Position numbers and translations under genes: made by a program. A DNA stretch of 62,493 bases, the filler included, from Dimorphilus gyrociliatus (lineage: Eukaryota > Animalia > Annelida), in the NCBI GenBank assembly GCA_904063045.1. It is 5 parts of 5 records of this genome, joined end to end, with 100 filler letters (N's around TTAATTAATTAA, not from the genome) between each part and the next. Parts side by side here need not be neighbours in the genome. Positions count along the whole stretch, not along the records: positions 1 to 23,517 come from CAJFCJ010000171.1; 4 more parts are not named here. One strand, written 5' to 3'. This document shows, in pieces, positions 461 through 23,517 of this stretch (positions within the stretch are counted from its first letter, which is position 1; every line of letters begins with the position of its first letter). The notes beneath the pieces were generated by a model. That model did not search any database, was not told where the DNA came from, and saw nothing but the letters and a program-made list of their open reading frames with translations.

Positions 461-463
461 TTC

Positions 464-4000: not shown

Positions 4001-4383
4001 GGTGTAAAAGTTCCAAAATAAGGAATAGGTAGCTGACCATCCAATGTTAAATATTCTTTAATTGATTTTAAATTCACATCTTTTTCTTGCTCTGACTGTA
4101 AGTCAACAGAAGACAAATCAATTTTCTCTTCACTGTTATCACTGGTAGCTACAAAAGTTAACTCTGGTGTATGTTCATACTGTTCCATTTTAACTGAAAT
4201 AGAGGGAGAATTCTCCTTTTTGATCTTTCCATGAATTAGCTCTTCAAATGTTACTTTCCTTGGGGGTGTATATTCTTCTAATCTTGTTAATGCATCTGCT
4301 CTATTTTTTCGTCCTGTCACATAGTTAATTGTAAATTTTAAATCCATTAAAGCCATGACCCATTTTGCTGTGCTGACATTCAA
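952..4383 (-). CDS. RNase H end - integrase - second aspartic protease - acidic spacer - signal peptide - Env N-terminal part, one frame
   Basis: NRADALTR; HNHHG..CTLC; DIMGP / TDQGRNF / NGLVERRN; WLGPY; ALCDTGALRSFI..LGCDFL; D/E/S-rich tract; MKQMLWLPLVMTVMVICGCIHS; Cys-patterned ectodomain. Confidence 0.9.
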   Translation of the reverse strand: MNVSTAKWVMALMDLKFTINYVTGRKNRADALTRLEEYTPPRKVTFEELIHGKIKKENSPSISVKMEQYEHTPELTFVATSDNSEEKIDLSSVDLQSEQEKDVNLKSIKEYLTLDGQLPIPYFGTFTPFIMEMFVHKEMIWIILEERNILVLPDHLMLTLLPKFHKNKIHNHHGPRMTLQIITKTFWHPKLKIMIENSIKDCTLCEQMNGRSRVYPLVETFHPASPMELVAMDIMGPLPMVKSYRFILVIVDHFSRYTVLYALKQQTSKEIANLLFNRFFPIFGIPKQMLTDQGRNFVGKAFKEFMKVLGIEKIQTTAYRSQSNGLVERRNREVRKEINKLVVEENQHNWVANLPLIQAFLNQSPVGSTRLPPQELLFGTSTRTLIDVTMHTTSPETNVLFVFNHQQQLVQLRATAFCKSIMAKEQYRERKNRNLNLPKYFEVDDEVFLRNDAARIAITKIPSLKWLGPYRITKVNHQKWIYEIQMDDNTCKLVHGSRLRLANESNKLETGKEATTIFHLVEKEITHLQYLSQVEGRNDFQFRLKNQKGQEVIALCDTGALRSFITEKEIKLMDVTIMDKETIGLPIITSADGKALKQKGSVKLNIQFAGESMEQEFIVMENLDIAIILGCDFLQTVGANLNFEAKQCSLKFDRRKGNLAERIRQPQLNKVTIAMMGQHDSSSESSDSDDSEMEVTNSDTGYDTSNTFKTDSNYSLNEPSSSSESDDTETNNELDQNTDSEANIISDREDEISSSDDESIIIESEIIDITHSDNESIIIEGEIIDITHSDNESLIVVDSSQDEKENTSDTDNESVIFLDETKIISEQLDSQQEVEPQYIELEDGITIRVEQQHKIFNHSTIANTGRANMKQMLWLPLVMTVMVICGCIHSITVPKPSYQGAHVTSANITLTFKPPLYFCSNQLPSQAFDLADEPTCNIESQETKTITADIYELNLEEIETRAVKCQVYLRTNFYTYYFFGAKKRRIVNSVIKVTHDQCRQMIKDKRSFQGKPLMVKRNTWIHQDQFPAAYTWPTTTKVLEYTTIIQFGKAYWQPPNMKITTNLDYLEDCLPGQSYCETEEAIIVFRNLKNNYTLGQQSPWIKISNRISCIKLLVTILVQGILFWTSLIKISLLMELVVLEQKY

Positions 4384-4469
4384 TTTGTTTTGCTTAAATG
4401 TTTGTACTAGACTCTGATGGTCAGTATATAAAAAGAATGGCTTGTCTTGAAGGTAATGTAAAAATTTCT

Positions 4470-7316: not shown

Positions 7317-7354
7317 ATTTACTTTCTCAAAACTTTTGAATAAACCAAAAGAAT

Positions 7355-7372
7355 ATCCTGTCGACTGCGCCA
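7355..7372 (-). promoter_or_regulatory. Primer binding site TGGCGCAGTCGACAGGAT, probably tRNA-Ser
   Basis: Begins TGG just after the LTR; complementary to the metazoan tRNA-Ser type 3' end (TCCTG.CGACTGCGCCA), assigned from memory. Confidence 0.8.
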
Positions 7373-7376
7373 AATT

Positions 7377-8011
7377 TGTACTGCTCTTGCTGGCAAAATC
7401 TATGCGTTTGCAAGTTATAACAATACTGGTTCTACTCGAACCTTTAAACAAATGTTTAAATTAAAATGGTTTATTCGCAATAATAATACTTAAGCAAGTA
7501 ACAATATGAGAGTTCAATAGCAGAGTAGATAGTTTGTAATAGCAGGTTGCCAAATTACCAAACTGTCTTCCAATGTTGAGGAGTAGATGGATGGTTCCAG
7601 TGGAGGTTGTTTCCAGATGATTTTCCCAGGTCCTTGGGTCCAGATGGAAGCTGCATGCCAAATGAGAATAATGAGGATTTATATACTTTGAGGTTTGTCT
7701 CTGACATCCAATCATCACTTTACAGTTGCCAAAATGTGTAGTTCATATTTATCTTTAGTAACAGGATGTTACAAGGTTCAACATTTAGGAAGGTTAATTG
7801 AATTATAACTTGGCCACACCCTAGGCAAGTTAATTAAATTATAACTTGGCCAAACCTTTATTGGTAATTAAAGATGAACCTTCAAGCTGACTAATCAGAC
7901 TTATGTTTGGCCAATGTTATAGCATTTTCTTGCGTAGGTTTTAAGATGTACATGTATATGTTGCATAAAATAATAGAGTTCAAGCATGTAAAATATAACC
8001 AAAGTTGTACA
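7377..8011 (-). repeat. 5' LTR of copy A (635 bp, TGTAC...GTACA)
   Basis: Identity with copy B starts exactly at TGTACAAC with different flanks; ends GTACA 4 nt before the PBS; contains TATATAAA and AATAAA. Confidence 0.9.
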
Positions 8012-8018
8012 TTATTTT

Positions 8019-8845
8019 ACTTAAAACTATTTTGTAACTTTTCTCCAAAACTACTGGGCTGATTTTGTTCATTCTTTTTTTAAAATACTCATCTTTAAAT
8101 TTCTAATAAGATGGCATATATGCTGAAAGCTGAAAGCTAAATAGGTCATGTGACCTAGAAAAAAAATTTTAGGCGGAAAAGAAAAATACAAGTATTGGGT
8201 TGATTTTAAGATACAATAACTTTTTTATCTAACTCTAGAATCTTAAGCATCTTAATCTCAAGAAAATCCAATAAGTCATTTATGAAAAATGGCATGTTTT
8301 AGTTAACAAATGTTACAAAAGATATCATTAAGAATTATTATGAAATTACTTAAAATTGGAAATAAAGTAGCATAGTTACACCTACAAAATTGATATAAAA
8401 TTCTTTACATATTGGAACTTGACATTTAATACCTTCTTTCTGATCTTTTGACTTTATTAATTATACATCTGCATCTTAAAATCAACATAGACTTCAGATT
8501 AGAATGAAACATCTCAAGTTACACCTAAGAAATGGATAGTGAACTTCAATTTTAACAAACTTATATAACTACTATATTATCTTTATTTAATTTCTTTTTA
8601 TCTGTTTAATTTGCTAAAAATTTGCTAATGACCTAGTTAACTTGACCTACTTTCCCTCTGGGGTGCAGTGAAAATAGACGAAACAATAGTATTATCCTAC
8701 TTTTCCACTTATAACTATTTTGTCACTTTTCTCCAAAACTACTGGACCAATTTTATTCATTTTTTTAAAACAAGCGCCATTTAATTTCCAATAAGATGGT
8801 GCAAGCTCTGATAACTTAATAGGTCAAGTGACCTAGAAAAAATTT
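8019..8845. repeat. Two diverged copies (~8019-8165, ~8707-8845) of a ~145-bp dispersed repeat; LTR A lies beside the first
   Basis: Shared AACTATTTTGT.ACTTTTCTCCAAAACTACTGG...TAATAAGATGG...ATAGGTCA.GTGACCTAGAAAA. Confidence 0.75.
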
Positions 8846-9848
8846 TTACATGGAAGAGAGAACACTAACATTGTGTTAAAAATATGACACAATGCTATTT
8901 TGACACAGACATTGAGTATACCTTTTAATATTGATAGCTTGAACAGGTAGAAAAAGATGAAACTAATGTAGAAAGCTCTTTCTAGATTTTGAAGATAGGA
9001 TTGGATCTTGTTGAAAGGATAATTCTGGTGAAGATTCCTGAAAGCCTTTGGTAACTGTTGTAGAAAAAGGATTGCATTAGCATAAAGACACAATGTAATA
9101 ACTATTACTTACAAGATGATAGAAAAGAAGTAAGTTGTGATGGAAAATATCCAAAAAGTAGAGTCTAAAAGGATACAGATGGAAAGAATTACTCCAGTGG
9201 TTCAAGGTAGAATGAATCCTTACGAAATTTATGCAGGTATATATATATAAGAAACAACATTAAATTCAATTCTCTGATTGGTTATTCTTGTTTGAATTAA
9301 TTAACAGTTGTTTGAATATTATCTTGTGTTTTATCTTATATGTTTGGAATGCTAATTGGATCAATAGACAGGTAGATAAACAAAGGCATAGGAAAGTATA
9401 GCGTAGTAAGCAACTACAAAGCACAAACAATAGGACTAAAGTGTCTTTGAAGTCATATGAAAGGCGGAAACAAAAAATAATTTTTTTCTATATTTTGTAA
9501 AGTCTGATTGTAGATTCATAATCGGTGGAAAATTTCAATGAAAATTGATATATATAACATAGAATTGTGATGAAAAATAAGGACTTTAGAATTTTCACCA
9601 AAAAATGGTATAAATGATAAAGGAGTGTTGTCTATATCAAAGGTTGTGACGGAATAAATATCATTAATATGTGAATATATACATGAAAAAGAAGGTGTTT
9701 AAAAGAGTATCAAGGCTTAATTAATCTATTCATTTTTTACAATTTTTTAGCAAAAGAAAAATGGAACTTTTTTAATATTGAATACAAAGAAAAAAATCTT
9801 TTAACATCTTTTAATAAAAAATACTAAATACATTGCTACGAATTTATC

Positions 9849-10187
9849 AAAGGTGACAAGTTAATTGATATATTTAATTGACCTTTCCCACTCTGGACAG
9901 ATAATTTAAACAAGCACATTTTGGATGAATTGTTTGGCTTTTAACAATTGCCAAACTGTTTATAGAACTGTCATCCTTTGTGTCACATTTGATTTTCAAA
10001 CAAGCACTGCTGCCTTTATATACCTATCACTTCTCTAGTCTTTCATTCGTCACCATAGAGTGAACACCTTGCTATTGCCAATTATCTTTGGTAAGCTAAT
10101 CATATTTTCTTATTTTTCAGTCAGAAATACTTGGACAAATATAGACATATTATATATCATTAGAATCATCTTTTTACGCCCATTAAC
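9849..10187 (+). promoter_or_regulatory. Promoter/leader module P1 (TATATA 10017, Inr TCATT 10043, donor GTAAGC 10091)
   Basis: Canonical TATA-Inr spacing; 46/50 identical block with P2; shared AAAGGTGACAAGT. Confidence 0.6.
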
Positions 10188-10317
10188 CTTGTGCAATTGG
10201 CAAAAGAATTGGACCGAAAAAATTTTCATGCATAAACTTTAAACAACGAGTGTTTCCTCTTTTTTTCACTCTCTTTAACAATATTTTTCAATTATTTACA
10301 GATATTTTGACCATATC

Positions 10318-10416
10318 CAGTTGCCTTCTACCGGTTGCCTTCCACCTGTTGCCTTACCACAGTTGACCTTCCCCAGTTGAGCCTTCTACAGCTGCCTTAC
10401 TACAGTTGCCTTCTCA
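10318..10416 (+). repeat. Seven ~14-nt tandem units, consensus CAGTTGCCTTCYAC
   Basis: Read directly from the sequence. Confidence 0.9.
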
Positions 10417-11884
10417 AAAGATTCTTCACCATCATCCATCACTAACTTCTCTAGTCTGATCTTTCCAACACAACATTCTGTCTAATTTAAAGTAAGATAT
10501 CTATTGTGAATTTTGGTTGATTCCTTGGACTTTGTCCTGAATTGATCAAATGTCTTTTATATAAGGTTTTCTGGTTGATTCCTTTTCTTTTGAATCTGAA
10601 TTGACCTTGTTTTGTAGGGAACAGCTTTGTTAATGCTCTAATTTATAGTAAGGTTTCATTTCACAGAGAAATAATTCTCTTATTAAAAGTAACAATAACA
10701 TCCTTCTCTTTATATTAGAAACTTAAACTAAATGGGTTTTCCATTTTTCCACCATAGTTTCTCTAATTTACATGATAGAGATTTGATTTTTTTAACATTG
10801 GGAGTGTAGACTATGCCAAATTCAAATCCGTTTACAGAAATAATATAACACTTGTAGTTTTTCAGTTATTAGCTGTTGAAAAAGGTTTTTTAAAAGTTGC
10901 TTTTTGCATAGAAAACATTAAGATTTGACATATTTCTTTGGGTAGGATATTAAATAATATGCCAATTAATTAAAAACATTAAACTAGGTTAACATATTGA
11001 ATGTTTCTTTCTTAAAAAAATTAACTTTTTTAATTGAAAACATGTCAAAATGTTTCGGATGCTCTTAATTGATTAATACATAAGATTAGGTAGTTATTCC
11101 TTATCTATAGCTGTAAGTCTTTGCTCTTAAATTAAATAATTGATACAAATCTTACTTAAAGTTGTTAATCTTTAAAATATAGACTGTTCAAAAATTTATC
11201 GAATATTCAATTTTTGTCATAGAAAATCATGCTATTTTAATATTATTGTTAAATATATAACTGTAGAAGTAAATAAGCTTAACGTAGGTATAAACAGATT
11301 TAAATTCTGTTAGGTAATAGCTGAGAAAAGTTAATTTTTCGATTTTGAAAAAGGTGACTTAAAACAATGTATTTAAAAATAGATCAAACATCTACAGATG
11401 TATTAATTCTTTACAAATTTGATTGAATAATAAGATAAGCAACAATCTTATTTATAATTATCATTTTAGGAGAAGTCTGGGTTAATTTTTTATCATTTTC
11501 TTTAATTATTTCATGATTTATGTACACAAATAGGCCTATAGCTCCTTTAATATTAGAGCTAGAAACTTGATTTTTTGAACGTAGAAAGATATTACTAAAC
11601 CTAAATTAAATTTTGTAACAAATTCATCCTATCTGGTATAGTTTTTGCTCATTTGACAGTGGAACATAAACTTTTCAACTTAATTTTTATAGTAGAAAAT
11701 CCAAACTGTTAACCTTCATTCTTGTATAGGCTAATTAGAATTTAAATGGGCTAAACATAGATCAAAACAGATCTAAAATCAGTCAAGTAAATGCTGAGAA
11801 AAGTTAAATTAAAGATTGTAATATTTGTTAAAAAATAGCTATAATTATAATCAATAATGTTGTGTTTAATACTTTTTGCGCAGG

Positions 11885-13390
11885 ATGAATATCCAGTGGT
11901 TTATGCCCTTCAAAACTCTGCCTTATATGCATCCTCATGTTGATGTAAACATGAACAATTTAAAAGTCCAACTAAGATACATTCTACAATGCTATTTCAA
12001 AGCAGAGAATTGTAAAGTAGCAAATCATTGGAATCACCTTTTAGAAAATGAAATAAAGAGGACAGATCTTGGAGGCAAAAATAAGTTAGATTATTATAGA
12101 GATAATAGAGAGAATAACATATTTGAAGACATATTTGAAGGCAAAAAACAGCTGATAAATACTGTAGAAAGATGCTTTAAAGATTTTTATGAATTGCACA
12201 AGAAACTTAATCAATACTTCTACTTAAAAAGATTGTTAAATCTTTTAGAATCTAAGGAAGAGTTAATTAAAGTATTAAATTTTGTAAATGGGGAAGTGTT
12301 AAATACTAAGAGGAATATGAAGAATTTCTCCAAATCATATTTTGATGAATTTTATCAAGATGTTCTTAATTTTTATGACAATATGAAGAAAAGAAATAGA
12401 GATTTTCAGGAAAACGAAATTGTAAATCAAGCTTCTGCACCACAGCAAATAGAAAATACACAAGTTATTAAAGAGGTTGCTGTTCAAGTGGATAGGGCCC
12501 CTACCCATAACATTGCTGTTCAAGTAAAGAAGCCATTAACAATTGATATTGCTGTTCAAATATCTAAAACATTCAAACATGGAAGCACCCAAACTACTGT
12601 ATCAAGGTCAACTAACAAGAGAAAGATTCCAAAAGTGAAGGAGGTGAAGGATTCAGAAAGAGAAAATCAAGGAGGGGAACCACAAAGAAAGAAGCTAAGA
12701 GTTGAAAGAGCAACAGAGCAGGAGCAAGAGAAAGGAAAAGAACCAAAACAGCAAAAAGAGTCACTCAAGAGAAAGAAGTCTAGAGTTGAAGGAAGAAGAG
12801 AAGAAAAAGCGCAGCAAGCAGAGAAAGAAAAAGAGGAAGAACATCCAGAGGGAAAAAAGGAGGAAAGAGTTATGGAATTGAATAAATTTAAATACATAAA
12901 GAGAAAGAATGTGAAATTGGATAAAGCCTTTAAAGGAAAATGTAGACAGGAACATTATGACTGTATAATAATTAGTGATTGTTCCTTTGATAGACTGTCA
13001 GAGAAACAACTCTTCCAGATTAAAGATACAACTATGGGAATCAGCAAAAATGTTGTGTTTTTCCAAATAGAGAAATTGACATTTTTGGATATAATTGAAA
13101 TATGCCAGAAATGGAAATTTTCATTTACAAAAATATTTTTCTTCTCCAAACAGAAACCTAAAACTTCTGGAGAAATTCTCAATCAGTCAGTCAAACTTGA
13201 AAAGATATATCTCCCTGTCAACTATTTTACAACTTATACTGAGAGAAATATGAAGAGAACTGGATTGAACTTTATAGCACTTCCTCAACAATTGCAGAGC
13301 AAGTTAATCAATAAAAACGGTGGTTATAATCAGCTTTCTCAACAACAAGATCAATACCTCCTACTTAAACACTTCTTTAATGAATTGTAA
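11885..13390 (+). CDS. ORF1: unknown N-domain, charged linker, C-terminal SGNH/GDSL-like domain
   Basis: ~500-aa intact ORF; ATG just after acceptor TTTTGCGCAG; CIIISDCSF motif paralogous to ORF2 and ORF3. Confidence 0.75.
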   Translation: MNIQWFMPFKTLPYMHPHVDVNMNNLKVQLRYILQCYFKAENCKVANHWNHLLENEIKRTDLGGKNKLDYYRDNRENNIFEDIFEGKKQLINTVERCFKDFYELHKKLNQYFYLKRLLNLLESKEELIKVLNFVNGEVLNTKRNMKNFSKSYFDEFYQDVLNFYDNMKKRNRDFQENEIVNQASAPQQIENTQVIKEVAVQVDRAPTHNIAVQVKKPLTIDIAVQISKTFKHGSTQTTVSRSTNKRKIPKVKEVKDSERENQGGEPQRKKLRVERATEQEQEKGKEPKQQKESLKRKKSRVEGRREEKAQQAEKEKEEEHPEGKKEERVMELNKFKYIKRKNVKLDKAFKGKCRQEHYDCIIISDCSFDRLSEKQLFQIKDTTMGISKNVVFFQIEKLTFLDIIEICQKWKFSFTKIFFFSKQKPKTSGEILNQSVKLEKIYLPVNYFTTYTERNMKRTGLNFIALPQQLQSKLINKNGGYNQLSQQQDQYLLLKHFFNEL

Positions 13391-13584
13391 TTTACTTGTA
13401 TATTTCATATAGTAGTTGTCTTATAGAATAAAAGATTTTTAATGTATGGCATGCTCATTGCTATTCAATTTACACAGAATAAAGAAATTCGTTTTGAGGC
13501 CTTTAATTTGCTTTCAAAATAAATTAGTCAAATAGAAGCTGAGAAAACTTAATTTAAAGATATTGCTAATTTTGAGGTTTTAAA

Positions 13585-14150
13585 AAAATATTCATTCAAC
13601 TTTAAACACCTCGTCTAGCCTTATTTCTTATCCAAATTTGACAAATTTTTTTTAAATGATAGAGAATTCAATTTCCTTTTAGAATAAATTAACTCCGATA
13701 ATATACAACATAGTTTAAATGTTTTTTAAATAGCTTAAATGAGTGTACTGTCATAAAACAAAAGGATGTTGAAGAACATCTATTTTAGGATCAATTTACA
13801 GTTGCTTTAAATGTTTATATTTTGGATGTAATTAAATATATTAAAACTATCACTTTTATATATCATTTGATAAAATATTCATTCAACTTTAAGCTACCCT
13901 TCTACCCTTATTTCTTATCCAAATTTAACAAAATTTGTTTTGAATTGTAGAGAATTCATTTTCCTTCTAGAATAAATTAACTCCGATAATATACAATGTT
14001 ATTTTAACACTGATCAATTAGGTTAAACACATGTACTATCTAAATACGAAATTATGATGAAGAACATCAATTCTACCAATTGATTTACAGTTGTTTTAAA
14101 TATTTATAGTTAGATTGAATGATATATATTAAAAATGTCACTTTTATATA
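13585..14150. repeat. Two tandem ~287-bp diverged repeats (weaker third copy ~14410)
   Basis: AAAATATTCATTCAACTTTAA...CCTTATTTCTTATCCAAATTT...TAGAATAAATTAACTCCGATAATATACAA at 13585 and 13872. Confidence 0.85.
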
Positions 14151-15054
14151 ATATTTTCTTTTAAATTTGAAAGAAAATGATAGTCCCAATTGTTACATAG
14201 ACACTTGTACTAGTTTTTTGCATGGTTGCTTTAATTCTTAAATTTTGTTATAGTTTTTTTTAATGTAACCCATTCAAAAATATATTTCGTATATATGAAG
14301 TAGAAAAATTCAATTTCTACTGTTTTTTTTGGAACAAATTTCATTAAAATCTGTCCAGTAGGAGTCTAGAAAAGTTACTTTAAAAATATGCACTTTTATA
14401 GGTGTTTTAGAAAAATATTAGTTCATCTTCAGACAGCTCCTCCTCCCTTATTTCTCATTTGATTTTAGTCAAATTTCTTGCAAAATACTCCAAATTCAAT
14501 TGCCTTTTCAAATATCCAAACTGCCATAGCAGAAATGATTTCATTCATTCCGTTTGAATAGTTTAAACAAGGTAACAGTCAGTAAGAAAAATTGTAATTT
14601 TTTGAATTGTTGGATGGTGATTGGATAATAGATTCAATGACCTACTTAATGAATGGCACATTATGACTTGACTTTTCTAGGTCAACTATCTGGTGACTGA
14701 ATAAGATTTTCATTGACCTACATTAAAAATATTGCTTAAAGAATATATATATATATGTGTATTATTGTTTCTATTTACACATTCTTCAATATCCATTCTC
14801 ATATAATTCTACAAATTAAGTACATAAAATTAATCAGTAATTCACCAGTTATTAATTTATTGAATGATAAAGAGTATAATTAATTAATCATTTGATTGCA
14901 ATGATTCTTCCTTATTGTAAAAGCATTTTTTCAAAAAGATAAATAAATAAAATATATTAATATCTATACATTATGACATACAAAGGTCAAGAGGTGATGG
15001 CTAGAGTGACACTTTCTTCACAAGAACACCCTTATCTTAAGTGATATAATCTGA

Positions 15055-15321
15055 AAAGGTGACAAGTGATATGTTTTGATAGTGTCTTATCAAGGGCTTT
15101 GTTGCCATTGAGGGGGGAAGGGGAGGGGCTTCTCTGCTAAAGTATATATAGTCCTTGCTATTGCCCACTCTTTCATTTGCTACCACAGAGGAAAGACTGT
15201 TCACCAGACTTGTCTCTGTTACAAGTAAGCTTTACACTTTTTTTAACTTTTTTGGTATAAAGAGTTGACGGAATATAGACTTATTATATATCATTAGAAT
15301 CAGCTTTTCAAGCCCATTAAC
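15055..15321 (+). promoter_or_regulatory. Promoter/leader module P2 (TATATATA 15143, Inr 15173, donor GTAAGC 15225)
   Basis: Same layout and conserved 50-bp block as P1. Confidence 0.6.
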
Positions 15322-16451
15322 GTCATTTAAAAATCAATTTGATCAGGCGAAAAAAAATTTTACACGTAAAAACAAATGTTTGACAAGTAAAAAATAAAGA
15401 AATGTTAAATCTTTAACTATAACAGTTTAATTCATAGAAGCATTTAATTACTATATTTGGTTGATGATTTCTCATAATAATCTTTCTATATTCTTTATAC
15501 AGAGCCAACTTTTTGCTGATTGATTTGCTATTTGCTGCTCTTTTTTTTCAACATTTTTCTTGGATTACAGAGTTAGTTATATGTTACATTGTAATATGAA
15601 TTTTTATTATTATTATATATTTTTTCTTACAGCATCTCAACCTTAAATCTGATTGACCACATTTGAAGTTCTACAAGATCAAAACCTACTAACTGTTCCC
15701 TTCTTCTTCTTGAGTCTTACAAGAATCTAGCTATAAATGTAAGTAGTTTATGTTTTGTTTTGAAGAGTTTTGTCTCCATAAATAAATTTACAGCCCTTGG
15801 TATGAATTTATTTTTGTTTTAAATATTTCTTTATGTTAATATATTGAGATATTCCACCTTTCTTATAAATTTAAAAGGATTACTTTTATGTAAAAAGAAA
15901 TACAAAGAAACACTTTTTTGAAACTTTTTAATTTATTATAAAAACTTGTATATTCCCAATGAAAAAAAGTTCACCTTTTAGGTTCTTCATTTCAATGGAA
16001 TATATATGCAAAGTTTAGGACTGCAAAATTCTACATTTTTCTTTACAGAATAACTCTAAATGAAATGGCTTTTTTTGCTTTTAAATTTACAATTATTCTT
16101 TTCCTAAATTTTAACTATTTTTCATGAGAAACACTTTTTGCTTTCCAGTTTTTTTAATGTGAAAGGTTGTTGATTCTCCATGAAACAAGTTTGCCTTTTA
16201 GGCTCTTTATTTCAAAGGAGTAAATATGCAACATAATTTAATTTCAGATCCAAAATTTTTCTCTACAGAATATCATTAAAAAAAATTATTTTTTTGGTTC
16301 TATGAGGAGGAATATCACAAATATGATCAGAAATATATTTATATATATGGTTAGGCTACTTATATTTATGTTCATGTTGAGTTACAAACTATGTTATTGA
16401 ATAGATATTTATGTTTTGTTTCTTTTTTGTTATTCATTTAAGAAAGGAATA

Positions 16452-19040
16452 ATGAATTGTAAACTGAAAATGAAAGGAAATAAAGAAAAAACAAAGCTAC
16501 AAATCCATCCATGGTTTTATCCTGATATCTTTAAAGAAAAGGAATGCCTTAAATTCAATTTCAATACAGCACAATCTGATATTTACAAACAACTTAAGTT
16601 CATCATTGAAAAGCATATTGAAAAATATATTGGTGTCCCATTCAAAAAAATTTGTAGTTCATCAGAATTCTTATACTTTGTCAATAGATTTAATATTACA
16701 AAAGCTTTTCAAGAATCAATGAAAAATGAATATAAGAAGTTTAAAGATCTAATTGAAAAAATGTATTTGGAAAATCTGGAACATTACCTTGTATTTGAAA
16801 ATTATGCTAATAATCTTGGTATTCTATGCAGACACTTTGATGAAAATGATATCAAAAGATGGATTTCAAAAATCTTTTTGGAAAAATCTGCCAGATTGGA
16901 CAAGGACTTTGTTGATGAAACAAAAGAGAGTTTGATGGAATTTTGTGTAAGATGTAAAAGTAATGATAAAAACAGGAAAAAGAACAAACCTAACCCTGAG
17001 TCATCTAGAAGAGAAAATGGTGTAAGTGACATGGCTGCTATAATAGATATTGGTACAAATGGTGAAAAAATTAAAGAAATCACAATAATGAAAAAGGTTA
17101 CAACTGATAGTATAATTAAAGAAATACAAGAAGATAAGAAAGATACAAGTCATGGCACAATTAAGGAAATGAAAGGAAATAGGAAATATACAAGTGACAA
17201 GGAAATAGAAAAATCATCAGTTGTTGAAAAAGATGAAAGTCATAAGAAATTGAAAGCAACATCTATAATAGAGACACATACAAGTGATAATATTGTAAAA
17301 GAAACACTTGTAACAGAGAAGGATGCAAATTATAAGGAAATAGAAGAAACAACTATTCTACAGAAAAATTATGATACTAATATCAAAGATAAAGGGGATA
17401 GTCTGAAAGAACATCAACAAATTTTTAATGAATTGGAAAGAGAAAATGAACAAAGTATTCTAACAACAATTGATTCTCCAAGTGATAACAAGCCAGAACA
17501 AGTGAAAGATGATGAGTTTATTGCAGAAAAGAGAGACTCTGTTAGTATAACCAATGAAGAAAACAATCAACAAACCAAATCAACTGAATCTAGTATAGAA
17601 AGAAATAATGAACAAATAGTAAATACAGCTGAGGAAACCAAGAATAAAACAGCAACTGAAGAAAAGGATAAAAATGAGGAAGAAAGGTTTACAGATCAAA
17701 TCAGTGTTGAAAATGATCTTACTGAAATGATGGAAACAGCTACAAATGAAAATGATAACAAATTTTGTTCAAGAGACATTTCAAATGAGACAATCATGGG
17801 TGCTTGTGATAAAGAATCTGTTGTTACAAAATTACATTTGTCAAAAAATTTTGAATTAGGATCACCATTAAAAACATCTTCACCAATAGAAACTACTAAC
17901 AATATCTCCATTGATTCTAGTGAACTGGATTTGTTTGATGAAAAAGCCTGGTTGGCATTGGAAGAGATGAGGTCTCAAGATCACTGCAAAGAAGCAAAAA
18001 AAATGGGTATAGATGGAGCCAATGCACTTGTTTTGAGTATGACAGATTGCATCAAAAAATATAAGGGATGGAAAATGATATTGAGGAACAATTATAGAAA
18101 AGATAAAAAGCTGATTGATATTTATAGAGAATGGGGAAAGAATTTCTTGTCAGACAAGGAGGCAAAAAACTTTTCAAAGTTATTGCCACCAAATATACAA
18201 ATGAAAACAGAATTTTTTATGATATCTGACAGTTCATTTAGAGATATTCAAGTCAAAACTATCTCAATATTAGCCTCCAAATATAAAATTGCTAAAAATG
18301 GAATATTAATCAACATTAGCCAATTAAACTATGAAGATATTTTACCCATTTTAATAAACTGGAATATTCAATGTCAATATATATTCATACATACAAATTT
18401 AAATTCTCCTAAAGAAACATATGGATTAGCAAAATTTCTAAAGAACAAGTATGGAACTTGCAAGAATGTGATCATAGCCATTCCATTTGGCACAAAACTA
18501 TTTTCTGCATACAAAGATATTCAAATGGCAACTAAGAACCAAGCCACTGTTCTTGATATGACTGATATGAGAAAATTGGGATTTACAGATAATCCAACTG
18601 GAAATTCGAAATGTAAACACCTGACAAAGAAGGCACAAGAATTTTCAATTGATTTAGTAATGAAAACTTTGCAGAGAATTATCAAAGATCAGAAAGAGGA
18701 AACAATGGACATAGATACATCAACTAACAAGGTAATATTAATGTCTGGATTTAATTTCTATAAACAATTAAATACTCAATATGTTGTTAATTTGAGCAAA
18801 TATCAGATTCCAAATGATGTCAATAGTTTTTTTAATCTTGGTTTAAAGTTTGTACATGAAAGTATAAAACCAGACAAATGGAAGCAATACACATTGTTCA
18901 ATTTAGAGAGATTCTTTAAAAAAGTATCAATCATTAAAAAACAAAATAAATCAACAAATCTGGAAAATCTTAGATGTATTAACTATCAATGGATACCAAA
19001 AGAAGGATTTGAAAGAAATATAACATCTGTTGAAAACTAG
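16452..19040 (+). CDS. ORF2 N-half: N-domain, acidic linker, helical segment, SGNH-like domain, start of the PLE pol (VVNLS..LGLKF)
   Basis: Intact ORF; FFMISDSSFRDI..KHLTKKA; PLE N-terminal motif YVVNLSKYQIPNDVNSFFNLGLKF at ~18783. Confidence 0.8.
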   Translation: MNCKLKMKGNKEKTKLQIHPWFYPDIFKEKECLKFNFNTAQSDIYKQLKFIIEKHIEKYIGVPFKKICSSSEFLYFVNRFNITKAFQESMKNEYKKFKDLIEKMYLENLEHYLVFENYANNLGILCRHFDENDIKRWISKIFLEKSARLDKDFVDETKESLMEFCVRCKSNDKNRKKNKPNPESSRRENGVSDMAAIIDIGTNGEKIKEITIMKKVTTDSIIKEIQEDKKDTSHGTIKEMKGNRKYTSDKEIEKSSVVEKDESHKKLKATSIIETHTSDNIVKETLVTEKDANYKEIEETTILQKNYDTNIKDKGDSLKEHQQIFNELERENEQSILTTIDSPSDNKPEQVKDDEFIAEKRDSVSITNEENNQQTKSTESSIERNNEQIVNTAEETKNKTATEEKDKNEEERFTDQISVENDLTEMMETATNENDNKFCSRDISNETIMGACDKESVVTKLHLSKNFELGSPLKTSSPIETTNNISIDSSELDLFDEKAWLALEEMRSQDHCKEAKKMGIDGANALVLSMTDCIKKYKGWKMILRNNYRKDKKLIDIYREWGKNFLSDKEAKNFSKLLPPNIQMKTEFFMISDSSFRDIQVKTISILASKYKIAKNGILINISQLNYEDILPILINWNIQCQYIFIHTNLNSPKETYGLAKFLKNKYGTCKNVIIAIPFGTKLFSAYKDIQMATKNQATVLDMTDMRKLGFTDNPTGNSKCKHLTKKAQEFSIDLVMKTLQRIIKDQKEETMDIDTSTNKVILMSGFNFYKQLNTQYVVNLSKYQIPNDVNSFFNLGLKFVHESIKPDKWKQYTLFNLERFFKKVSIIKKQNKSTNLENLRCINYQWIPKEGFERNITSVEN

Positions 19041-21418
19041 ATGATACTGATGATGATGATGGTGGTGATGGTGACAGTGATGAAATGTTACAATTTTTCA
19101 AAGGATGCAGAAAGGCAATTCAAAGTAATATTTTTAAAGAGAATTCTAATCAAAAACTTGGAAAATTTGACAAAGATTTCTTTAAATCTCTGAGAAAGTT
19201 TTTATCATTAGACATTGTGATTAAGCCAGCTGACAAGGGATCTTGTGTTGTGATACAAAATACTGAAGATTATATCTACATGTGCAATCAATTACTTTCT
19301 GATAATAAACAATATTGTAAACTATCAACAACTTCTAATATAAATATTTCTGGTAATAAATTTTTAGAAAAGTCAATTTTCTATTATAAAGACCTAATTA
19401 AAACATTTAAAGTTACCTTGGATGAAAAAGAATATAAACATTTGTTGGATTCTCTGTGTACAAAGAAGCATTCTTTTGAGAATAGAATATTTTATGGCTT
19501 ACCTAAAATACATAAGGAACCAGAACAATGGTTGGTTGATGGTAAAATTCCTAAAGGAAGGCCTGTTGTTAGCAATTTAAGGACAGAATCTTATGAAATA
19601 TCAAGATATATCTCACATCACCTCAAACCAATTAGTATACTACATTCTTCATATATTGGTAATTCTAAACAACTGTTGGATGAACTTAATAGAATAACAA
19701 TTCCAGATGATGCTCTTTTGGTGACTCTGGACATAAAAAGTATGTATACAAACATTGATACTTACACTGGATTGAAAGCTGTAAAATATTTTTTTGAAAA
19801 GTATTCCTACAAGCACAGACCTGATGATTTTCTTATTCAACTTCTCAAATTCAACTTGCATAAGAATCATTTTAAATTTTTAGATACAATATACTTACAA
19901 AAGAGTGGTTGTGCTATGGGTCAAAGTTATGCTCCTGCTTATGCAAACTTATGGATGGCTTGGGTGGAAGAAGTGTACCTCTTCAACATTAGACCTAAAC
20001 CTCTATTTTATAAAAGATATTTGGATGATATTTTCCTAATTTGGACAGGTAGCATTGATACATTTCATAGCTATCTTCAAAAAGTCAATAATATATTAAA
20101 AAATTTAAAGTTTGAGGGAACAACTAGTTTTCAATCAATCAACTTTTTAGATTTAATTCTATTTAAAGGAACAAGATTTCTCTCAACAAATCAATTGGAT
20201 CATCTAACTTTCTTCAAAAATTGTGAAACATTTCATCAACTTCATAGAACTTCTTTTCATCCTAAACATATCTTTAAAGGACTTTTAAAATCTCAATTCA
20301 AAAGATTTCTTAATAACAGCTCCTCTCCATTTCTATTCTTTCAAACTTGTCAAACTGTGATGAAACCACTTTCCAGTCAAGGCTACAGTGCTAAAGAAAT
20401 AAGAAAAGCAATACAGTCTGCAATTAAAGACCAAATGAAGAAAGAAAACTATGAAAGAGTGTTGGAAGAAAATAGAAAGACACAGTGGAATATTCCAAAG
20501 GAATTAAGAATATATTTTAACATAAGAAAAAAGATATTCTGCCCTCTAAACATGAATTTCATTTATAGGAAAAACTGTGTAGATTTAATTACAGATAACT
20601 CAAAAGTATTTCTATTACAATGTAAAGAATGTGGACAAATGATGTACTTTTCTATACAACAACATAAAAAAATCAGCATCTTACAAACACTTAAATACCT
20701 TCTATCAAGAAAATATTTGGAATTGAATAATATTGACCTAGTAGAAAACTATATCCAGCATCAACATTTTGCAGAAAATCAATTTAATATAACAATATTT
20801 CCTTATGAACAATTGCAAAGAGATAAATCAACAATTGAAATGAACAGATATATTTATCACTTGAATATGAAAAATGTCATGTATTATCCCTTTGGCTTAG
20901 CCAGATATACCAGTTGTCCAGTATATTCAAAGCTACCATTAATTATGCCTTATAGAAATGATCATGGACCAGTGTTAAAAAAATTAACAAAAACCTATAA
21001 ATTATTAAGTGATAAGAATTCCATATTTAAAAACATTCCTCTGATATTTGCTTTTACAAACAACATAAATAGTTATTTTCAATTAATTCATAAAAACATT
21101 TATTTTAAACAGGAACAAAATATGTCTACTTCCTTATTTCATAAAAGAAATACAACTAGTACAGATTCATCAGAAAAATGTCATTTTTCACTAAATAAAA
21201 CAGGAACATCAACAATTAAACATTTTTATAAAAAGAAGAATGCAGAAGAAACATCTTCACTTAGTGCACCACCTCAACCAGGAAAAAAACCAAAGTTTGA
21301 TACAATTACAAGAAAATTCACTATGAAGAGGAAGATGGAGAAGGAAACAGACGAACATAAACCAGTAGTTGCAGAGAAGATGGTTAGAACTGGAAGAAGA
21401 ATTAAGAAGAAACTTTAA
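19034..21418 (+). CDS. ORF2 C-half: Penelope-like reverse transcriptase with thumb and degenerate GIY-YIG-like domain
   Basis: VIKPADKG, FYGLPKIHK, GRPVVS, TLDIKSMYTNI, GCAMGQSYAP, YKRYLDDIF, INFLDL, HPKHIFKG; CKECG..QHF..YPFGL. Confidence 0.93.
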   Translation, partial: KLDDTDDDDGGDGDSDEMLQFFKGCRKAIQSNIFKENSNQKLGKFDKDFFKSLRKFLSLDIVIKPADKGSCVVIQNTEDYIYMCNQLLSDNKQYCKLSTTSNINISGNKFLEKSIFYYKDLIKTFKVTLDEKEYKHLLDSLCTKKHSFENRIFYGLPKIHKEPEQWLVDGKIPKGRPVVSNLRTESYEISRYISHHLKPISILHSSYIGNSKQLLDELNRITIPDDALLVTLDIKSMYTNIDTYTGLKAVKYFFEKYSYKHRPDDFLIQLLKFNLHKNHFKFLDTIYLQKSGCAMGQSYAPAYANLWMAWVEEVYLFNIRPKPLFYKRYLDDIFLIWTGSIDTFHSYLQKVNNILKNLKFEGTTSFQSINFLDLILFKGTRFLSTNQLDHLTFFKNCETFHQLHRTSFHPKHIFKGLLKSQFKRFLNNSSSPFLFFQTCQTVMKPLSSQGYSAKEIRKAIQSAIKDQMKKENYERVLEENRKTQWNIPKELRIYFNIRKKIFCPLNMNFIYRKNCVDLITDNSKVFLLQCKECGQMMYFSIQQHKKISILQTLKYLLSRKYLELNNIDLVENYIQHQHFAENQFNITIFPYEQLQRDKSTIEMNRYIYHLNMKNVMYYPFGLARYTSCPVYSKLPLIMPYRNDHGPVLKKLTKTYKLLSDKNSIFKNIPLIFAFTNNINSYFQLIHKNIYFKQEQNMSTSLFHKRNTTSTDSSEKCHFSLNKTGTSTIKHFYKKKNAEETSSLSAPPQPGKKPKFDTITRKFTMKRKMEKETDEHKPVVAEKMVRTGRRIKKKL

Positions 21419-21508
21419 ACTTTCAATATTTTTTAATTAGTTGTTTTCCTTTGAATATTTGTTTTGTTTGCTTCATAATAATTTGCTTTTCACTGCATAT
21501 ATCTGTAC

Positions 21509-21511
<3 letters not shown>

Positions 21512-21553
<42 letters not shown>
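21512..21553. repeat. (TA)21 microsatellite
   Basis: Read directly. Confidence 0.97.
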
Positions 21554-21555
<2 letters not shown>

Positions 21556-21660
21556 TATTCTATGTATTCTTAGATTTGTTCAGTTCATATCTATAATATT
21601 CTTTTTGTGTAGAATATACTAAATTTTACTAAATTATTTTGTTTTTATAGATTTTCTATA

Positions 21661-22584
21661 ATGGCAAATAATACTCCACAAAATCAAATTGAAAGAATAG
21701 AAAATGATGCAATTCTTATCAATCAAATAATTGATATTGAACATTTTTTACCACCATCTTTTCAACAATTTTTTAACTTTGGAACATTTTATAATCATCT
21801 TCAAAGATTTAGAAGAGATGACAGAAATCATCCTCCAATTTTTGATGCAAGTAAATTTGAAAAAGATACTGTAGACAAACTGATGAAATTTAAACAATTT
21901 TGTGATGAAAAAATGTGGCTTGTTGAACAACACCAAGTAAATAATATAAATAAACAACAACTTGGAGAAGTGATATTAAGATATTTGAATGGTACTGACC
22001 AGCTTGTAAGATTTAATAATACAATCAAAGTTAATAGAAGAAAAACATTTCAATGTTGGTGAACTACTAGCATCTTTTGCAGATATTGGAGTGAATTTAA
22101 CAGAAGGGGAAATGGAAAATCTTATGAAAATTCAACAACCAGCAGTGAAATTTACTACCAACTGTAATTTGCTTCTCTTAACAGATGCTAGTTTGAGTGA
22201 TTTGGATTTGTTTCAAATAGAAGATGTTAAGAGGAATATCAATTTTCATGGAAATATTTTGATTGTAAATATTTGTGGATTAACATTTGAAAATTGCAAA
22301 GAAATTTTATCAAAATGGAAGATAAAAACTAACATTGTAGCTCTACATATTCCTTTTGACACCATTAATGATATTGATGATAATTTTCCAGCTATTTATC
22401 AAAGTAATGGAAATATTAAGGAATGTATGCTGTTTATATCATACAAAGTTCAGATAATTTTAATAATCAACAATTTCTACCAGAAAGGTTAAAAAAAATG
22501 TTTACAAATATTGTTTATATCAATGGCATTATAAGAGGAGATCCTTTTCATAGAAGACTCCAACAGACAAGATATCTCCTTTAA
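21661..22584 (+). pseudogene. ORF3: helical segment plus SGNH-like domain, two frameshifts (~22045 and ~22430); may be intact if these are assembly errors
   Basis: FCDEKMWL / GEVILRYL and LLLLTDASL resemble ORF2 FDEKAWL / KMILRNNY and FFMISDSSF; the three pieces join with single-base shifts. Confidence 0.65.
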
Positions 22585-22859
22585 GAAATATTGTTCAACA
22601 TTTAATTTTTAATGAGATATTAGTAAACACTAAAGATGTGATAGAACAAACAACAAAGAAGAACTGGAAGAAGAAGATTAAACAGACAAGATATTCAGGC
22701 TATAGAGGAACAACACAATGAGTGAAATTAACAGACCTATCAAAACTAAATTTCAATCTCTGTATATTTTATATAAACACTTTGATATTTCTCTAGTTTA
22801 AAATAGTAATATTAGCATAATATAACTATGTATTTATATCAATGCAAAATTGATTAGGT

Positions 22860-23180
22860 GTGTGACACACTGGAATGCCAGAGGCTGACATATCACTTCT
22901 TATATAATACCAAATGTGTCTAGGCTTGGGATACTAAAACTTTTATGTAATACCAGATACTTGTCAAGATAAACTGACATATCTTAGGATATGTCAATTA
23001 CATAACACTCCTCTATATAAGCTACAAGGTCTATCAAACATCATCACTTCAAGAAAATTCTCAGAACAAGAAGGACTGCTCTCTACAAAAACTCTGTTTA
23101 GTGATTCAACATCTACATACTACAAAAGATCATTTTTCTACATCAAACAACTCTGAAAGAAAAAACAAAGTAAGCTATAT
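22860..23180 (+). promoter_or_regulatory. Promoter/leader module P3 (TATATAA 23014, Inr ~23043, donor GTAAGC 23170); its ORF lies beyond the linker
   Basis: Same TATA-Inr-donor layout and TGACA/GATA motifs as P1 and P2. Confidence 0.5.
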
Positions 23181-23517
23181 GTTTGTTTGTTCATTTGAGA
23201 AATTAAAGATACTATAATGTTTTACATTTATGTATCTATTTGTTTATATATGTTCAGGTGACTTTAAGATGTTATAGTTGATTTTCATCAATTTCATTTC
23301 TTTCATTAACACTATAAGACCTGTCAGACAACTTGGATTATATATCTTGCTGTTTAACAGTTCAAAAATTGTTCAATGAGGAACAGGAACAAATGAAAAT
23401 TATAAACTCTGGCATCTTTTGTAAACATTATATACACATTGTACCTACATTATATCTAAACATACCAATAGGACAACAAAAAAAACCATTAGGCAAATAA
23501 CTATATATCAGACCAAA

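Follow-up and report, generated by a model that had tools for sequence, protein, structure and literature searches.

The DNA from about 8019 to 23517 of the window (the whole stretch analysed, 62,493 nucleotides) comes from the annelid Dimorphilus gyrociliatus. It is probably one copy, possibly a damaged one, of a giant (at least 16.4 kb), multi-copy family of Penelope-like retrotransposons (PLEs), and we put the probability of this reading at about 0.72. The results supported a Terminon-like PLE outside rotifers, where 'Terminon-like' refers to parts and layout and not to the reverse transcriptase (RT) clade (Athena). A comparable design, with related esterase-fold ORFs, a dead endonuclease, a hammerhead and telomere repeats, has so far been reported from the 'Terminons' of bdelloid rotifers only. 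An earlier note on this DNA had offered two readings: a domesticated, PLE-derived gene cluster, or a multi-gene PLE from outside rotifers, as yet undescribed, that recalls Terminons. Recurrent ORF order, the SGNH fold and purifying selection now back the second, and the parallel was strengthened by an apparently dead GIY-YIG domain, the hammerhead, reverse-complement telomeric repeats at the 3′ end and clustering at contig ends. The observations behind it held in part: the ORFs, the shared domain and the RT stood, and a common N-domain and a fourth unit did not.

Organization of the element

Positions 1–8011 (minus strand) belong to the Ty3/gypsy LTR retrotransposon 'Dingle', named in the genome paper (PMC7854359). 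It had Pfam matches to RVT_1, RNase H, protease and integrase and is cut by the contig start; its LTR (7376–8011, minus strand) has many copies elsewhere with 98–100% identity. Dingle lies inside or adjoins the 5′ leader of the PLE and is no part of it. The PLE itself begins 5′ of position 9849, with a conserved leader reaching back to about 8019. Its layout, all on the plus strand, is a non-coding leader, ORF1, a 3-kb spacer, ORF2, ORF3 and a 3′ UTR of tandem units. The leader (8019–11875) was collinear, at about 80% identity, with C101:15308–19225, C283 and C76:160526–161209 (another subfamily), and had no ORF longer than 80 aa in either subfamily compared.

ORF1 (11876–13390, first ATG at 11885) encodes 504 aa and was intact in four subfamilies. 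It consists of a helical N-part, a K/E-rich linker and a C-terminal SGNH-like domain (12956–13387, IIISDCSF...), the layout also found in the first half of ORF2. A word search of 5.8 billion proteins returned no homologue of ORF1. The N-domain (WFxP..QL+xI) that ORF1 and ORF2 were thought to share reached a profile–profile probability of 0.1–0.3%, and they have a short motif in common and nothing more. The non-coding spacer (13391–16415) was collinear with C76:162703–165335 at 75–87% identity and contains a 288-bp tandem duplication (13585–14150, TRF).

ORF2 joins four parts in one protein: an N-terminal module, an SGNH-fold domain, the PLE RT and a GIY-YIG domain without catalytic residues. 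Its N-terminal half (16416–19040) comprises a helical N-part, an acidic/low-complexity linker and the SGNH-fold domain. The RT half lies in a second frame (19085–21418), and a 1-base deletion near 19035, relative to the C70 copy, splits the two. ORF2 is a single uninterrupted frame of 1540–1707 aa in C76, C3, C51 and C50. ORF3 (21661–22694) is broken into 21661–22062, 22091–22492 and an out-of-frame remnant to 22694; in C76 and C51 it has 346–353 aa counted from the first Met. The splits in ORF2 and ORF3 are single-base indels against the C70 copy, which is 99.5% identical, and are possibly assembly errors. Translations of the C-terminal tail of ORF2 (20903–21418) end in a basic RTGRRIKKKL, and intact ORF3 copies terminate in this motif too. 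Three co-oriented ORFs had been claimed earlier, and all three are indeed on the plus strand. They are all under purifying selection (dN/dS 0.14–0.42; ORF1 0.14–0.28 in four subfamilies, ORF3 0.16–0.40), and their divergence moves together.

The ORF order and collinear DNA recurred in C76, C51, C3 and C101. The order leader–ORF1–spacer–ORF2–ORF3 is found in at least four diverged subfamilies of one genome; this is a single giant element and not an array made up of three units. The other genomic copies, proposed in the earlier note as a way to define the ends, gave the shared ORF order and a 3′ end with telomeric repeats; the true 5′ end was looked for in them and not found. The search for a target-site signature of the element also returned none.

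An SGNH-like domain common to the three ORFs

ORF1, ORF2 and ORF3 contain one homologous domain of about 200 aa, which was collinear in a joint alignment of 17 sequences. Subfamily alignments were compared with hhalign. ORF2 matched ORF3 with a probability of 95% (E 1.8e-8, 124 columns), ORF1 matched ORF2 with 69% (4.6e-5, 63 columns), and ORF1 matched ORF3 with 62% (7.6e-5), all in the identical register. In a HMMER search of the genome, the ORF3 query hit the ORF2 domain directly (E 9e-8). The strand plus [S/T]DxS segment and the following I..L.F....I...W pattern, noticed earlier, were present in all three ORFs, and the FxDE..WL / ILR likeness of ORF2 and ORF3 fell within their 124-column match. 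ORF3 also has in common with ORF2 the segment just 5′ of the domain. The SGNH-fold part of ORF2 thus has paralogues in ORF1 and ORF3.

The ORF2 domain (18027–18701, plus strand; 225 aa modelled) was predicted confidently by AF2 (pLDDT 92.1, pTM 0.89), with an SGNH core at residues 60–222 (18204–18692). The best Foldseek matches were TesA, GDSL lipases and PAF-AH; the best 50 VIA-align matches were all SGNH (Z 8–11.3), and Atlas features gave SGNH at 0.92. The profile and structure comparisons that had been recommended thus found the three domains homologous and the ORF2 model to have an SGNH fold. A plausible Ser/Asn/His set is kept in ORF2 only (Ser of FMISDSS, Asn of HTNLN and His of SKCKHLT); in the joint alignment, the block II Gly and the triad Asp are not conserved. 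Esterase activity may persist in the ORF2 domain. The ORF1 domain has no counterparts of the three candidate residues and is probably non-catalytic. In the ORF3 domain (22160–22694, LLLTDASL ... GDPFH), the residue at the nucleophile position varies with the subfamily (Ala, Gly, Glu or His). The domain is almost absent elsewhere: a profile search of 1.84 billion proteins found 3 relatives.

Reverse transcriptase and GIY-YIG remnant

The earlier statement that only ORF2 carries an RT was confirmed (RVT_1, E 5.5e-7, at 19700–20200). The Penelope-type RT (19085–20581) has a DKG motif at about 19220, a YLDD palm and a thumb. It had 1059 PLE-type homologues; the best HMMER matches were endonuclease-containing (EN+) PLEs with 31–43% identity, and a canonical PLE from D. 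gyrociliatus itself was 27% identical over 659 aa. The GIY-YIG-derived domain (20582–20902) was aligned with nine canonical EN+ PLEs. It keeps two Cys and two His, its YIG motif has an insertion, and in all members of the family other residues stand in place of the catalytic Arg, Glu and Asn. Pfam GIY-YIG did not match it even at E 10. From these residues, the domain is predicted to be catalytically dead.

Hammerhead and telomeric repeats at the 3′ end

What had been taken for a 'fourth unit' at P3 (22695–23517) is the start of the element's own 3′ UTR, cut by the contig end; 23218–23345 is conserved with other subfamilies. In C70, the 3′ UTR runs on for about 1.4 kb through two 837-bp tandem units, each containing a hammerhead, to (CCCTAA)n at C70:258393–258267; a different PLE follows as the next element, beginning about 1.4 kb past the point matching 23517. 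Near-identical and diverged copies alike have tandem 3′ units of 600–840 bp, with a minimal hammerhead ribozyme in each and (CCCTAA)n after the last.

Rfam hammerhead models gave no score on this ribozyme. Its CUGAUGA and GAAA are invariant, 92% of cells were paired (23–60% in slid controls), and there were two compensatory double changes. It lies about 260 nt 5′ of the telomeric repeats. In the subfamilies of this copy and C70 and of C51, (CCCTAA)n directly follows a conserved 3′ terminus of about 100 nt. In C3, the 3′-unit match stops at 9255, about 60 bp ahead of (CCCTAA)n at 9318–9359. The repeats follow one conserved 3′ terminus, always in sense orientation. TTAGGG is the telomere-type repeat of this genome (339 matches, 0 for the control). 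Among readable 5′-truncated copies, none had a telomeric cap.

Copies in the genome and a relative in another genome

The genome contained 62 RT, 24 ORF1 and 46 ORF3 matches, many of them fragments, and these counts are not copy numbers. All copies either sat in small contigs or were no more than about 40 kb from the end of a contig, and in most determinable copies the 5′ end pointed toward the nearer contig end. The high-identity copies C171, C70, C195 and C166 may be haplotigs or segmental duplicates and not fresh insertions. The annotated proteome contains one copy only. Dingle and a MULE were inserted into copies. A relative in another genome has this domain fused to its RT, contains it in two further ORFs and carries a covarying hammerhead. 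It also lacks the GIY-YIG Arg, Glu and Asn, and its ORF1-like gene is on the strand opposite to ORF2. Its identity to anything in the D. gyrociliatus genome was only 28–35%.

Proposed mechanism and alternative explanations

We infer that the element multiplies via RNA. A G-rich TTAGGG 3′ end, at a telomere or a break, would prime reverse transcription by base-pairing to the RNA's (CCCUAA)n tail. Priming from a chromosome or break end is proposed because the element has no working endonuclease, as for Athena and Terminons. The outcome would be subtelomeric, head-to-tail, 5′-truncated arrays. The hammerheads, presumably dimerisation-dependent, would serve to process multimeric 3′ transcripts or to give the 3′ end its shape. 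In ORF1 and ORF3, the domain is probably a non-catalytic binding module of an ORF1p-like accessory protein; such proteins might, for example, associate with membranes or lipids or help to assemble RNPs.

Telomeric flanks alone do not prove endonuclease-independent insertion, because an adjoining canonical EN+ PLE (Pfam GIY-YIG 4e-6) is also flanked by (CCCTAA)n. The element could be an ordinary endonuclease-dependent PLE that targets TTAGGG-like repeats, with the flanks a target and not a priming device; PLEs are known to favour microsatellite targets (PMC8557442). We regard this as very improbable: the catalytic residues are lost family-wide, even in the foreign relative, and every time the repeats come, in sense orientation, after one and the same conserved 3′ terminus. 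The PLE proper might also be ORF2–ORF3 alone, with ORF1 and the leader a separate, co-duplicated element or gene. The 2–3 kb non-coding spacer, the fewer matches to ORF1 than to ORF3 and the opposite strand of the ORF1-like gene in the relative would fit such a composite. However, ORF1 lies 5′ of ORF2 and co-oriented in four subfamilies, its divergence tracks that of ORF2 (83/56/44% and 78/72/67% identity), and it contains the rare domain that ORF2 and ORF3 have. Scarcer 5′ parts are what 5′ truncation predicts, and the composite appears unlikely.

We also give little credence to a domesticated, PLE-derived cluster of subtelomeric host genes, for example in chromosome-end maintenance, spread by segmental duplication and not by retrotransposition. 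Selection on all ORFs, confinement to contig ends, the long conserved non-coding leader and spacer, and an upstream flank common to two truncated copies, which marks these as segmental duplicates, speak for it. On the other side, one genome holds five or more subfamilies that have diverged deeply (dS above 1), each with its own ORF1–3 set. Hallmarks of retroelements are present: many 3′-biased fragments, the hammerhead, and a defined 3′ terminus to which telomeric repeats are joined. The single copy in the annotated proteome and the Dingle and MULE insertions within copies also argue against domestication.

Comparison with known systems

Like canonical EN+ PLEs (Neptune, Penelope/Poseidon, Nematis, Hydra; PMC8557442), the D. 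gyrociliatus element has an RT with DKG motif and thumb, a C-terminal GIY-YIG-type domain with CCHH residues, a minimal dimer-type hammerhead and terminal tandem repeats. Unlike them, it has three ORFs in at least 16 kb (2–6 kb in canonical PLEs), a telomeric 3′ tail, and neither endonuclease catalytic residues nor the upstream CX2-5CxxC linker. The esterase domain of LINE ORF1 proteins (CR1, L2, RTEX; ZfL2-1 structure, PMC3905857) is likewise an SGNH fold after a helical part in an accessory protein. The profile search of 1.84 billion proteins detected no sequence relationship to it, and the domain here is triplicated, is also fused to an RT and lacks the nucleophile in two of three copies. 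The Drosophila telomeric LINEs HeT-A/TART/TAHRE (PMC5537684) are also added head to tail at chromosome ends with 5′ truncation, but they have another RT class and replace telomerase, whereas TTAGGG repeats coexist with the D. gyrociliatus element and would be used by it.

The Terminons and Athena, telomere-associated, endonuclease-deficient PLEs of bdelloids (PMC6431247, PMC5408684), differ in several features. The D. gyrociliatus element has an annelid host and a CCCTAA telomeric unit, keeps a seemingly dead GIY-YIG fused to its RT, and has three SGNH-fold domains, one of them in the RT protein. About 260 nt separate its hammerhead from the repeats, whereas that of Terminons is directly beside them, and its 3′ end is a tandem array of 600–840 bp units. 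It showed no DEDDy, Rep or TM ORFs, and the 5′ truncations examined had no telomeric caps. Both are giant, multi-ORF elements without a working endonuclease. Each has accessory ORFs of GDSL/SGNH type, some of which lack catalytic residues, a hammerhead in its 3′ part and, at the 3′ end itself, short telomeric repeats in reverse complement. Near chromosome ends, both form head-to-tail arrays together with other elements.

Organization of the element and its genomic copies

Positions 1–23517 are one entire contig (C171) of the 77.9-Mb Dimorphilus gyrociliatus assembly, whose other contigs are numbered likewise here. A Ty3/gypsy element with reverse transcriptase (RT), RNase H, protease and integrase occupies 1–8011 on the minus strand. 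Its LTR (7376–8011, minus strand) has dozens of copies at 98–100% identity in the genome, indicating recent activity. This element is Dingle, a Ty3/gypsy family named in the Dimorphilus genome paper (PMC7854359). Dingle also interrupts the copy of the Penelope-like element (PLE) on C76/C283, at the site equivalent to 11218.

The features from about 8019 to the contig end are all on the plus strand. First comes a non-coding leader, conserved among subfamilies, which runs from about 8019 to ORF1 (11876–13390). A 3-kb spacer follows, which contains a 288-bp tandem duplication (13585–14150, two copies, 80% identical). ORF2 is split in this contig (16416–19040 and 19085–21418), and ORF3 is broken (21661–22062, 22091–22492 and a remnant to 22694). 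The 3' UTR begins after ORF3, and the contig stops inside it.

Five other genomic loci, on C76, C51, C3, C50 and C101, carry the same genes. The earlier note had proposed that other copies be used to define a shared ORF order, and such an order was found: ORF1, spacer and ORF2 recur in the same order and orientation on C76, C51 and C3. Intact ORF3 is also present on C76 and C51. C50 has ORF2 and ORF3, and C101 has ORF1 with the leader and, about 70 kb off, an ORF2-type copy that is separate. In these loci ORF2 is a single frame of 1536–1707 aa, and ORF3 has 324–404 aa as an open frame, or 319–353 aa counted from the first Met. The stretch 11218–22694 was collinear with C76 DNA at 75–87% identity, and the leader was collinear to about 8545–8019 with C101 and C283 at about 80% identity. 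With its 3' part included, the element unit is at least 16.4 kb long. The 5' terminus of the element was sought in the copies and not found.

The near-identical copy on C70 (99.5% identity) was used to judge the broken frames. Relative to C70, ORF2 is broken by a single-base indel at 19035, and ORF3 by single-base indels at 22041, 22453, 22471, 22566 and 22648. In total, 26 of the 38 difference events between the two copies (13283–13406 included) were single-base indels, and nearly all indel differences were of a single base. This excess looks like long-read consensus error, so frameshifts in either copy should not be trusted without reads. The breaks in ORF2 and ORF3 may be assembly errors of a small contig. 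In the C70 copy, ORF2 is itself interrupted by 2.7 kb of inserted DNA (C70:264907–267637, equivalent to window 18394–18403), probably a DNA transposon of the MULE type. Its inverted ends measure 129 bp (93%), a 10-bp overlap may represent target duplication, and a FLYWCH zinc finger is encoded in an ORF of 338 aa.

Three ORFs with a common SGNH-like domain

Profile–profile comparisons, using alignments made from diverged genomic copies, matched the three ORFs to one another, always anchored on the [S/T]DxS strand. ORF2 and ORF3 matched with a probability of 95% (E = 1.8e-8, 124 columns), ORF1 and ORF2 with 69% (E = 4.6e-5), and ORF1 and ORF3 with 62% (E = 7.6e-5). An ORF3 HMMER search of the genome also reached the ORF2 domain (E = 9e-8), and a joint alignment of 17 sequences was collinear across about 200 residues. 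The paralogy of the three ORFs, stated in the earlier note, therefore held for this domain. An N-domain common to ORF1 and ORF2, also claimed there, was not supported, its profile–profile probability being just 0.1–0.3%. The two proteins have the same layout, with a helical N-part, a charged linker and the domain.

Sequence databases gave little. Pfam searches with all ORFs and sub-pieces assigned neither the shared domain nor the N-parts nor ORF3 to a family; in particular, the domain had no sequence-level match to Lipase_GDSL. It had no sequence match in PDB, and among 1.84 billion representative proteins a profile search returned only three true relatives.

The fold was assigned by structure prediction, as the earlier note had suggested. 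With five close sequences, AlphaFold 2 modeled the ORF2 domain at a pLDDT of 45. After ORF1, ORF3 and the paralogues from a related foreign element were added, the 17-sequence alignment gave a pLDDT of 92.1 and a pTM of 0.89. The best PDB matches of this model in Foldseek were E. coli thioesterase I/TAP, GDSL-like lipases and PAF acetylhydrolase, with E values from 6e-5. When the model was aligned with 48,161 chains, the top 50 were all SGNH/GDSL hydrolases (Z 8–11.3, 141–176 residues aligned, rmsd about 3.3 Å). Protein-language-model features agreed with the assignment. Together, these results indicated that the shared domain has the five-stranded α/β/α SGNH fold, as modeled for ORF2.

SGNH hydrolases are defined by Ser (block I), Gly (block II), Asn (block III) and Asp-x-x-His (block V). 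Invariant in ORF2 of five subfamilies are the Ser of SDSS after strand 1, the Asn of (T/A)NLN after strand 3 and the His of SK.KH before the last helix. Neither the block II Gly nor the triad Asp is conserved. The nucleophile position is lacking in ORF1 (D-C/N/D-S/T) and also in ORF3 (D-A/G/E/H-S), which nevertheless has GDPFH. The foreign element's domain has the canonical GDSS. From these residues, we infer one possibly active esterase (ORF2) and two pseudo-enzymes (ORF1 and ORF3).

ORF2 (21389–21418) and intact ORF3 (C76:171650–171693) end alike, with a basic motif RTGRR(I/R)(K/L)..., which may be a nuclear-localization or RNA-binding tail common to both. ORF1 has ...MKRTGLNF inside the domain.

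A PLE-type RT with a degenerate GIY-YIG endonuclease

The RT in ORF2 is of PLE type, with a DKG motif, an RT core (RVT_1, E = 5.5e-7) and a thumb/HTH_animal region. The C-terminal half of ORF2 matched a canonical PLE of the Dimorphilus genome, which has Pfam RVT_1 and GIY-YIG domains, over 659 aa (BLASTP, 2e-60). The Atlas score was 0.95, and 1059 PLE homologues with PF28514, PF26215 and PF00078 were found.

The region after the thumb had no Pfam match. Its derivation from the GIY-YIG endonuclease (EN) is clear, because it retains both Cys and both His residues of the zinc motif of PLEs. All subfamilies and the foreign element have Phe, Tyr, Leu or Cys at the position of the first Tyr, an insertion within the YIG motif, and other residues in place of the catalytic Arg, Glu and Asn. 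We read the remnant as a putative inactive endonuclease that has been structurally kept. Judged by these residue losses, the RT protein is predicted to be EN-deficient.

Most of the RT's best homologues have GIY-YIG, and the top HMMER matches were endonuclease-bearing (EN+) PLEs; in a language-model search, the nearest Atlas clusters were mostly rotifer RTs without GIY-YIG. The RT may be either related to Athena or derived independently from EN+ PLEs.

Tandem 3' units with a hammerhead and telomeric repeats

C70, C195 and C53 were 98–100% identical to 22400–23517 and ran on through tandem units of 837–839 bp, two in C70 and five in C195. The 3' units of other subfamilies were 605–698 bp long, and C3 has as many as 11 of them in succession. 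The unit junction is conserved across subfamilies (...AAAACCTAA|TCAsAAGTAAG...). No copy of the 3' unit and no flanking pseudo-LTRs were found upstream of the leader.

In the final unit, the last 100 nt or so are conserved and pass directly into (CCCTAA)n with CCTAA variants. The tract is about 127 bp in C70 (C70:258393–258267) and shorter in C51 (C51:52450–52433); in C3 (C3:9318–9359) it lies about 60 bp past the last matched 3' unit. TTAGGG is the telomere-type repeat of this genome; it matched 339 times, and the reversed control not once. C70, C51 and C3 thus all have reverse-complement telomeric repeats at the sense-strand 3' end.

Every 3' unit contains CUGAUGA–helix II–GAAA–helix III–GUA, with a helix I of 5–6 bp at the flanks. 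This hammerhead sits just past the contig end, in copies 99.5% identical to C171, about 260 nt upstream of the telomeric repeats; the sequence that adjoins them is a different one, the conserved stretch of about 100 nt. The motif was found by eye and pattern and then tested by pair counts. Across seven aligned copies, 92% of cells were paired; when the partners were slid, pairing dropped to 23–60%. The foreign element added two pairs with compensatory double changes. Rfam searches of C171 and five loci scored no hammerhead at E up to 1. The helix III loop is a palindrome, ACCAUGGU, which fits the dimer-type minimal hammerheads of PLEs and explains why the Rfam models missed it.

The 3' units also form satellite-like arrays at C3:36620–44000 (period 698 bp), C59:123381–127809 (about 675 bp) and C195:6351–9900 (839 bp). 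In the arrays whose sequence was examined (C3, C70 and C51), each unit had an intact hammerhead motif. Such arrays could give self-cleaving, retrozyme-like RNAs, and reiterative, telomerase-like copying by the RT could have made the tandem units.

Position at contig ends

Every copy of the family was either on a small contig or no more than about 40 kb from the end of a contig. On C3 (3.2 Mb), they were confined to the first 36 kb. In most cases that could be judged, the 5' end pointed toward the nearer contig end, as priming of cDNA from a G-strand 3' end would predict; this is a trend rather than a test. Readable truncated copies had no telomeric cap at the 5' truncation.

On C70, another, canonical EN+ PLE (C70:253918–258306; ORF1 of 276 aa, RT/GIY-YIG of 791 aa) has its start codon 6 nt past the telomeric tract. 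This PLE has a CX4CX2C linker and about 270 bp of (CCCTAA)n after its 3' end. The locus is a head-to-tail PLE array with telomeric repeats between elements. This EN+ family has many tandem copies on C162, C254, C41, C46 and C257. An EN-bearing PLE resident in telomeric repeats is odd in itself.

A probable long-lived transposon family

The earlier note had considered that ORF1 and ORF3 might be ordinary single-copy host genes. They were found to belong to a multi-locus family, with 24 genome matches for ORF1, 46 for ORF3 and 62 for the RT. Pairwise dN/dS among subfamilies was 0.14–0.28 for ORF1, 0.20–0.42 for the N-terminal half of ORF2, 0.14–0.21 for the RT half and 0.16–0.40 for ORF3, in pairs whose dS was often above 1. 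Subfamily divergences of ORF1 and ORF2 increased in the same order. In a word-based search of 5.8 billion proteins, ORF1 had no detectable homologue. The recurrent gene order, dN/dS, co-divergence, match numbers and homologue-less ORF1 all argue for a long-lived transposon family and against single-copy host genes. A word-based protein search with the domain and RT matched only Dimorphilus' own copy, DgyrCDS14925. One sequencing run contained 23% of the searched words.

A related element from another genome

A related element was present in Logan contigs of runs ERR14224704-06. Its ORF2-type protein (1327 aa, 42% identical) has the N-part, domain, RT and dead GIY-YIG, and a hammerhead lies downstream. 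A second protein (472 aa) has an N-part and a GDSS-type domain, and a third (225 aa) has a third domain copy. The Dimorphilus assembly matches the 472-aa protein at 28–35% identity at most, indicating that the element comes from another genome. Both accessory genes are on the strand opposite to ORF2, within 8 kb of sequence. Two independent assemblies show them diverging from the RT gene, at a distance of about 790 bp, a layout that is either a head-to-head element pair or a truly bidirectional unit.

Comparison with Terminons

To our knowledge, giant multi-gene telomere-attaching PLEs have been described only in bdelloid rotifers, where they are linked to the odd biology of the group. The Dimorphilus genome is among the smallest of animals. 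A second, annelid case suggests that the design is either older or recurrent. An independent Terminon-like chromosome-end lineage may have arisen in annelids from an EN-bearing PLE, a reading to which we give a little over one chance in three. By this account, the GIY-YIG domain would have been inactivated yet kept, the (CCCTAA)n tail acquired, and a highly diverged SGNH module triplicated, with one copy fused to the RT. If so, giant telomere-priming PLEs evolved more than once.

The dead GIY-YIG would represent a natural intermediate between EN+ and EN-deficient PLEs, and the recurrent pairing of retroelements with the SGNH fold becomes testable in a tractable animal. The genome paper does not mention PLEs (PMC7854359), and the annotated proteome contains one copy of the family, pointing to an annotation gap at the subtelomeres of a reference genome.

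Terminons, reported from bdelloid rotifers, belong to the Athena PLEs, are EN-deficient and reach 40 kb. Their ORFs include GDSL esterases; at the 3' end a hammerhead precedes reverse-complement telomeric repeats, 5' truncations occur, and the elements form head-to-tail arrays at telomeres (PMC6431247; PMC5408684). The Dimorphilus family resembles them in size class (16.4 kb or more, including three SGNH-fold modules), in its SGNH-type accessory proteins, catalytically degenerate ones included, in the apparent lack, judged from residues, of a working endonuclease, and in its hammerhead and telomeric 3' tail. It differs in its host, an annelid and thus of another phylum than rotifers, and in keeping a dead GIY-YIG domain. 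Its SGNH fold occurs in three copies, one of them part of the RT protein by fusion, and its 3' units are tandem. A gap of 260 nt separates the ribozyme from the repeats, whereas in Terminons the hammerhead is immediately upstream of them.
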